DNA of 64,000 bases from Orbicella franksi. Taxonomy: Eukaryota. The position numbers and the translations under genes are program-made. The stretch spans positions 20,522,001-20,586,000 of the forward strand of contig OZ116703.1 of assembly GCA_964199315.1 (NCBI GenBank). Direction: 5' to 3'. Of the stretch, positions 10,579 through 45,662 are shown in pieces (the first letter of the stretch is position 1; every line of letters begins with the position of its first letter). Below the pieces are notes generated by a model that searched no databases, had not been told where the DNA came from, and saw nothing but the letters and a program-made list of their open reading frames with translations.

Positions 10579-10682
10579 TTAAATCCAAGGCCAGTCTGCA
10601 CCTTCTACAAAACATGCTTTCTTTTTGTAATGATCGATAAGGTAACTCCACATTTCACAAACCTTAAGCAAATTCTTGTTAC
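10579..10682 (-). CDS. HELZ2-like exon 33 (terminal)
   Basis: ttacag|GNKNLLKVCEMWSYLIDHY...WI*. Confidence 0.92.

Positions 10683-45662: not shown

Follow-up and report, generated by a model that had tools for sequence, protein, structure and literature searches.

We conclude that the 64,000-nucleotide stretch of DNA analysed here (the window, C6:20522001-20586000) carries one minus-strand gene of a scleractinian coral, encoding an ATP-dependent 3'-5' exoribonuclease of the HELZ2 family, at least 3562 residues long and equipped with an N-terminal TPR array, a reading to which we assign a probability of roughly 0.85. The gene model, which was built from tblastn matches to coral homologues, a junction solver weighing GT/AG sites, phase and homologue fit, and RNA-seq joints where these were at hand (35400-41399), comprises 34 exons. 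They run from 45662, the 5' end lying at high coordinates, down to the stop codon at 10579-10581 as one open frame of 3562 codons, and all introns are GT-AG. An earlier note on this DNA had joined 33 exons without a stop; the open frame was borne out, and the count became 34 exons plus a cassette exon. When amphioxus, hemichordate and echinoderm HELZ2-like proteins and coral proteins were compared with the window by tblastn, their exon matches were strictly collinear from 45.7 kb down to 10.6 kb, and the encoded domains follow in the order TPR array, linker, four CCCH fingers, pre-helicase domain, helicase 1, PAM2-like motif, OB_HELZ2, RNB and helicase 2 (Table 1). The claim of one chain holding TPRs, zinc fingers, two intact SF1 helicases and an RNB domain is upheld by the single frame, the motifs and the collinearity with homologues.

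Table 1. Features of the HELZ2-like gene, in window coordinates
Feature	Span	Strand	Exons	Remarks
Probable extra 5' coding exon	46296..46347	-		…LADLPFTISP; AG/GT sites; phase fits 45662 acceptor
TPR head, exons 1-6	41356..45662	-	45662-45465, 44703-44584, 44098-44036, 43402-43235, 42895-42859, 41480-41356	aa 1-237
Low-complexity linker, exons 7-12	36798..40810	-	40810-40715, 39491-39444, 38752-38687, 37659-37602, 37102-37040, 36872-36798	
Cassette exon	40134..40226	-	40226-40134	in-frame, in linker; additional to the 34; from RNA-seq joints
Zinc-finger array, exons 13-18	31582..35442	-		
Pre-helicase domain, exons 19-21	28125..31198	-	31198-31064, 29946-29339, 28566-28125	
Assembly gap	28626..28757			132 N, inside intron 20
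Helicase 1 core, exons 22-24	25852..27542	-	27542-26949, 26548-26126, 25927-25852	Walker A and DEAAQ
Giant exon 25	21338..25643	-	25643-21338	1435 codons; helicase 1 motif VI, PAM2-like motif, acidic linker, OB_HELZ2, RNB, C-terminal region
Exon 26, small connector	19105..19193	-	19193-19105	matches P0196 and P0212
Helicase 2, exons 27-34	10579..18598	-	18598-18455, 17690-17523, 17249-16960, 16403-16065, 15730-15479, 14797-14656, 11016-10849, 10682-10579	

Two alternative segments were tried in building the chain and set aside. Direct joins from the strong donor at 21338 to 18620, 18598 or 18562 broke the frame, so exon 26 is required between exon 25 and helicase 2. The stop-free piece 40679-40428 was considered as a TPR or linker exon; the RNA puts exon 7 in another frame, at the position given in Table 1. 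The helicase 2 exons are collinear with the spliced Logan ORF P0196 up to the end of P0196.

The catalytic part of the predicted protein is well preserved. All Walker A, Walker B and motif VI residues, previously described as intact in both helicases, were located in the spliced model: helicase 1 reads GPFGTGKT at Walker A (1235), DEAAQ at motif II (1365) and TALTRA at motif VI (1607), and helicase 2 reads GPPGTGKT (3073), DECGM (3275) and VALTRA (3516) at the same motifs. Pfam AAA_11/AAA_12 matched both helicase exon sets (exons 22-23 and 28-33), with E values of 3e-27 (AAA_11) and 1e-16 (AAA_12) for the helicase 1 core. These two UPF1-like SF1 cores lie one on either side of the RNB nuclease. 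A 1449-codon ORF (25683-21334) contains the end of AAA_12, OB_HELZ2 (PF25049; 35.9 bits against a cut-off of 29.3) and, behind it, RNB (PF00773; E 9.3e-67, 226 bits). The pre-helicase domain matched no Pfam family and is conserved in every HELZ2-like protein compared by tblastn (amphioxus, hemichordate, echinoderm and coral). Downstream of helicase 1 we found a PAM2-like motif, LNVNATEFMP (~25306-25341), which scored 19.1 bits against a Pfam PAM2 cut-off of 20; PAM2-like matches are also present in Stylophora, Desmophyllum and the HELZ2-like protein P0012.

The RNB motif I reads DPPGSRALDDA (window ~23940-23972, aa 2128-2138), with the first, third and fourth aspartates present and alanine in place of the second. 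All corals checked have Ala at this position; other invertebrates and most vertebrates have Asp, and placentals (tenrec) have Asn. Human HELZ2 also has Asn there and is active (PMC10516660). Given the alanine at the second of the four RNB aspartates, we infer nuclease activity rather than regard it as assured.

The assembly gap does not affect the continuity of the frame, since it is intronic, exons 20 and 21 join in phase and homologues span their junction. Intron 20 has a donor after 29339 (CAG/GTAAAA) and an acceptor before 28566 (TTTACAG/TT), with 59 read bases between the gap and the acceptor. The proteins P0202, P0199, P0212, P0213, P0214 and P0215 all align through the exon 20-21 junction and lose no residue there; in Stylophora, residues 778-980 and 978-1127 match on either side of it, and the flanks of the gap are also collinear with the paralogous copy.

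A further challenge to a single gene concerns the next junction. The locus could instead consist of two adjacent same-strand genes, one a ZC3H7-like TPR/finger gene ending after exon 21 and the other a separate helicase-RNB-helicase gene, the continuous frame being an in-silico artefact. Two Acropora digitifera RefSeq models (P0214 and P0215; 1069 and 1045 aa) do consist of the head alone and stop after the equivalent of exon 21, ending by read-through of the donor equivalent to 28125, with a 2143-aa model 1.2 kb downstream; in the window, read-through of donor 28125 meets a stop after 5 codons, and our RNA placement covered 35400-41399, upstream of the 28125/27542 junction. Against this, the donor and acceptor at 28125/27542 are strong and in phase (AAG/GTAAGA … TTTTAG/AT), the Stylophora, Desmophyllum and Montipora models run across the exon 21-22 junction, and bilaterian HELZ2 proteins all hold the fingers, pre-helicase domain and helicase 1 in one chain. 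In the Acropora locus, moreover, no trace of the Walker-A half of the helicase exon was found, pointing to a damaged copy or a misassembly. We therefore consider two separate genes very unlikely and retain the single transcription unit.

The Acropora digitifera arrangement was seen on DF971550.1 (L006) 10001-38967, where the 1069-aa head-only model is followed on the same strand by the 2143-aa model, and the Walker-A half of the helicase 1 exon was undetectable between the two. We read this arrangement as a damaged copy or an annotation split, a head-only isoform being the less likely alternative. If the latter, corals might still be making a ZC3H7-like, head-only isoform that ends in intron 21, as the Acropora models hint.

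Four RNA-seq runs (X21, X23, X6 and X14), of which two were raw poly(A) libraries from 2026 and two were sets of contigs, were placed on 35400-41399. They revealed introns with CT..AC ends, i.e., GT..AG on the minus strand, at 35443-36797, 36873-37039, 37103-37601, 37660-38686, 38753-39443 and 39492-40714, which link exon 7 through to the first finger exon; the joint 35441/36797 was found in 4 of 4 runs, and the others were recorded as 36870/37038, 37101/37601, 37657/38685, 38751/39443 and 39491/40715. In the stranded run X21, first mates mapped to the plus strand alone, as a minus-strand mRNA predicts. The 93-nt cassette exon provides an in-frame alternative route and was present in roughly half of the junction reads. 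The gene is thus expressed and polyadenylated, with its linker and first finger exons spliced, and this poly(A) signal over 35400-41399 represents expression at baseline level. Two intronic stretches, 36200-36600 and 39800-40000, exceeded the exons 100-1000x in RNA depth, were rich in loose ends and variants, and are probably fragments of highly expressed repeats or transposons.

The RNA also bears on the attachment of the TPR head. Whereas RNA-seq joints connect exon 7 with the first finger exon, the splice that would bring the last TPR exon onto exon 7 (41356/40810) is absent from the joints listed for 35400-41399, because placements at the poly-T tract 40808-40846 were dropped. This tract is the polypyrimidine tract of the exon 7 acceptor and abuts 40810. 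Together with an unspliced contig over 40793-41385 in X6, the missing joint might be taken to mean that the TPR exons belong to another gene upstream and that the HELZ2-like gene starts in the linker, at exon 7 or later. Exons 6 and 7, however, have canonical sites and join in phase, five coral models read straight across them (…DP/KNA…), the paralogue retains the same arrangement of TPR exons and linker, and the dropped placements directly abut the acceptor concerned. Of the alternatives considered, a foreign origin of the TPR exons is in our view the least probable, and we keep the head in the gene, with the join to exon 7 predicted from phase, splice sites and the coral models.

The model remains open at its 5' end. 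The earlier note had drawn the boundary at 45662; this position is a splice acceptor that is conserved in the 94% identical paralogue, not a start, so the gene extends further upstream. No in-frame ATG was present upstream of 45662 within that exon. A further 5' exon at 46347-46296 is probable, supported, if weakly, by its splice sites, its phase and an 8-residue match: its "LADLPFTISP" resembles "LEDLPFPIPR" (match, LEDLPFPI) at the N-terminus of the Montipora protein. Our search of the 5' region did not find the start-codon exon, which would lie upstream of 46347-46296.

The exon 1-2 junction of the model is uncertain. Homologues have 16-20 more residues at this point, forming the second helix of a TPR, and in the window an 82-bp insert breaks up the DNA that matches these residues, while the paralogous DNA contains stop codons. 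A 5' extension of exon 2 (…NHQLLFSYDVYEQFVLLLEAKSK) was accordingly rejected. A candidate 33-nt mini-exon (44842-44810) would keep the frame. We noted that 44710-44860 preserves what is left of an earlier 5' portion of exon 2 (NHQLLFSYDVYEQFVLLLEAKSK), with the 82-bp insert between this remnant and the present exon, and that the insert is flanked by a 12-bp direct repeat (GCTAAGAGCAAA).

The gene lies in a tandem family. A region of ~300 kb (G000:C6:20259934-20547683) carries six or more minus-strand RNB exons of the HELZ2-like type, of which window 21338-25643 is the last copy; one member of the cluster shows 94% RNB identity to this copy, and the remaining ones show 40-43%. The 94% paralogue lies 125 kb away and retains the same head-body unit. 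Its identity to our gene is uneven: 22192-35682 and G000:C6:20419597-20433061 are 97.6-99.2% identical, introns included, and the TPR head and 3' part are 83-93% identical, which looks like recent gene conversion or mosaic duplication. One further HELZ2-like copy, head-less, is found on C14 (G000:C14:7451271-7463934). It is orthologous to the Nematostella "helicase with zinc finger domain 2" (47-59% identity per exon), a HELZ2 that likewise is without the head.

Such a setting invites the suspicion that the locus is a decaying, non-functional duplicate that is transcribed without yielding a working enzyme. The presence of six or more paralogues within 300 kb would fit this, as would the missing start codon, the apparent disruption of the ancestral 5' part of exon 2 (an 82-bp insert in the window, stop codons in the paralogous copy) and the D…A.DD reading of RNB motif I. 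Yet a 10.7-kb coding frame has been kept with zero stops and all ATPase motifs intact, and the gene is correctly spliced and polyadenylated. The Asp-to-Ala change is shared by distant corals, and this conservation argues that it is not a private lesion. Decay of the copy is therefore a reading that we judge very unlikely, and we continue to treat the locus as coding for a HELZ2-like protein.

Other coding traces were seen near the gene. Window 1080-3152 contains TPR-like exon pieces of the next downstream gene (QGESEFHDGNLGGAIQYFSIALN…RRAQCF, and GYLDQSVRDCTK as a separate mini-exon). These pieces lie ~14 kb upstream of that gene's helicase 1 matches and reach a Pfam TPR E value of 0.1. Coral heads compared with window 1-10500 gave nothing significant, and only one exon piece of the present gene matched within the same interval, weakly (E 1e-4). 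Intron 32 (3.6 kb) contains, at 11600-13600, three near-identical repeats ~900 bp apart, i.e., a tandemly repeated element, each with a minus-strand stop-free stretch (…VHRSEGKLNICKPS.ELVRTCKDYVI…).

We then considered what the TPR head is and where it occurs. Exons 1-6 are collinear with the heads of Stylophora P0202, Desmophyllum P0213, Montipora P0212 and Acropora P0214/P0215, and an HMM of five coral heads matched the window model over its whole length (E 2e-96). The individual TPR exons of the window gave no Pfam match, being too short, so the assignment rests on orthologues and fold. The orthologous coral heads have Pfam TPR_1/TPR_2 matches, and the Stylophora head is predicted to fold into 15 helices (pLDDT 92.8) that Foldseek, run against Swiss-Prot models, placed with the TPR co-chaperones SPAG1, TOM34, HOP and RPAP3 at a probability of 1.00. 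ZC3H7 was outside the top 30 of these structure matches. A language-model feature search with the TPR part alone returned generic TPR families at 0.93, and word-indexed protein searches with coral heads returned only coral proteins and no ZC3H7. ZC3H7A/B clusters came first in a look-alike search with P0213 aa 1-690 at scores of 0.78-0.80, which are below the trust level and serve as a lead only.

Joined heads of this kind are found in several public protein models. The Montipora foliosa RefSeq "3'-5' exoribonuclease HELZ2-like" (P0212; 3106 aa) contains TPR, CCCH, helicase, OB_HELZ2, RNB and helicase domains, in the Stylophora and Desmophyllum models the TPR head continues into helicase 1 and further, and HELZ2-like proteins of amphioxus (Branchiostoma P0010) and Glandiceps (P0014/P0103) have N-terminal TPR matches. 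Coral and deuterostome head profiles aligned with an hhalign E value of 1.7e-9, a type of score that repeat profiles can inflate. No TPR was found in vertebrate HELZ2 N-termini. Judged from these protein models, the TPR head is common to the invertebrate HELZ2-like genes of corals, amphioxus and hemichordates and is not unique to this genome; neither vertebrate HELZ2 nor the second cnidarian lineage (the Nematostella type, C14) has it. The earlier note had named as a refutation of its reading that this architecture is already described as the standard invertebrate HELZ2; public models largely bear this out, although we found no paper in the searchable literature that describes TPRs in HELZ2. 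The head may be ancestral and may later have been lost or split in vertebrates.

The zinc fingers were central to the earlier note's proposal that a ZC3H7/RoXaN-like head had been fused to a HELZ2 body. The four CCCH fingers that had been claimed, each with an H-x3-E-x3-W tail, were recovered by regular expression on the model at aa 454, 540, 641 and 728. The finger region (31582-35442) consists of two tandem three-exon units, each with a CCCH exon, a conserved exon without a Pfam match and a second CCCH exon, that are 42-52% identical. Exon 16 matched Pfam zf-CCCH at 23.7 bits, and the best PDB match of two finger exons was the ZC3H7A finger 2D9M (E 6.4e-4 and 0.27). We did not identify in the window model the C2H2-like fingers described for human HELZ2. 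Huntzinger et al. 2023 (PMC10516660), however, describe a high degree of relatedness between the six N-terminal fingers of human HELZ2 and the ZC3H7A/B fingers, and a CCCH + H-x3-E-x3-W finger occurs in the HELZ2 of turtle, tenrec, fish, frog and lamprey. Because the same finger occurs in HELZ2 from lamprey to mammals, and because the model is collinear with tenrec HELZ2, we take the fingers to be native to HELZ2 and not a ZC3H7 graft. What stands of the fusion proposal is the co-occurrence of TPRs with fingers of the ZC3H7 subtype; the graft itself does not, the fingers belonging to HELZ2. Beside its generic TPR matches, the TPR part may or may not have a specific relation to that of ZC3H7.

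Across the whole genome the finger array turned up in this gene and its 94% copy alone; at the sensitivity of that search there was thus no sign of a free-standing ZC3H7-like gene. We put forward a common origin of ZC3H7 and the HELZ2 N-terminus as a testable hypothesis. Its fuller form, in which the TPR array and the alternating finger array are an ancestral HELZ2 N-terminal module that is still undivided in invertebrates and was kept twice by vertebrates, as ZC3H7A/B and as TPR-less HELZ2, is in our judgement doubtful, and we offer it tentatively.

Placement of the gene within the HELZ2 family was consistent across comparisons. Model aa 399-3556, running from the first finger through to the C-terminus, align collinearly with tenrec HELZ2, which leaves the TPR head and linker as ~400 N-terminal residues beyond the HELZ2-collinear part. 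The model is collinear end to end with Montipora P0212 (42-56% identity), and its body exons are 60-87% identical to Stylophora and Desmophyllum. In a maximum-likelihood tree of the OB-RNB region, the window gene grouped with Montipora and another coral (100/100) as sister to the Nematostella/C14 lineage (90/89). In this tree, from which DIS3-type outgroups were left out, it fell inside the animal HELZ2 clade as against bacterial RNase R. HELZ2 is already known to occur in corals and molluscs, and in full-length human HELZ2 the helicases and RNB cooperate in degrading structured RNA (Huntzinger et al. 2023, PMC10516660).

All functions that we assign to the coral protein are by analogy, and its nuclease activity would be of the HELZ2 type. 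The fingers would bind RNA, as in human HELZ2 (Huntzinger 2023), and the two helicases would open up structured RNA and pass its 3' end on to the RNB channel, with decay of structured viral or transposon RNA as the presumed outcome. The TPR array is most likely a protein-docking platform, as its fold matches TPRs of the Hsp70/Hsp90 co-chaperone type, and poly(A)-binding protein is probably recruited through the PAM2-like motif.

HELZ2, whose targeting is not understood, is induced by interferon and acts against RNA viruses and LINE-1. A coral HELZ2-like enzyme that combines a TPR docking array with a PAM2-like motif, supported at both the sequence and the RNA level, is of interest in this respect, and the locus, with its tandem family of six or more copies, offers a non-vertebrate model of how HELZ2-type enzymes reach their substrates. 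The same locus bears on whether ZC3H7 proteins and the HELZ2 N-terminus share one origin. Since RefSeq annotation already predicts the TPR head, the gain is one of description and evolutionary reading and not a new type of system.

By its sequence, the window gene belongs to the known HELZ2 family, in a build already predicted in other coral, amphioxus and acorn worms. Montipora P0212, Branchiostoma P0010 and Glandiceps P0014/P0103 have the same full architecture, including N-terminal TPRs, and Stylophora P0202 and Desmophyllum P0199/P0213 are partial models of the same type. The window gene has four CCCH fingers where other corals have 2-3, and the coral head is related to the deuterostome heads at the level of TPR profiles only. 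With vertebrate HELZ2 it shares CCCH + H-x3-E-x3-W fingers, the pre-helicase domain, a UPF1-like helicase 1, OB_HELZ2, RNB and helicase 2, all in the same order. It differs in its ~400 extra N-terminal residues (TPR and linker), in having four CCCH fingers in two duplicated trios, in the PAM2-like motif after helicase 1 and in the alanine at the second RNB aspartate. HELZ resembles the gene in its UPF1-like helicase, CCCH finger and PAM2 motif; it has one helicase and neither RNB nor OB_HELZ2, whereas the window gene has two helicase cores and an RNB domain. ZC3H7A/B (RoXaN), finally, likewise begin with N-terminal TPRs followed by CCCH fingers of the same subtype, but these proteins are ~970 aa long, with no helicase or nuclease, whereas the coral chain runs on into two helicases and an RNB domain.
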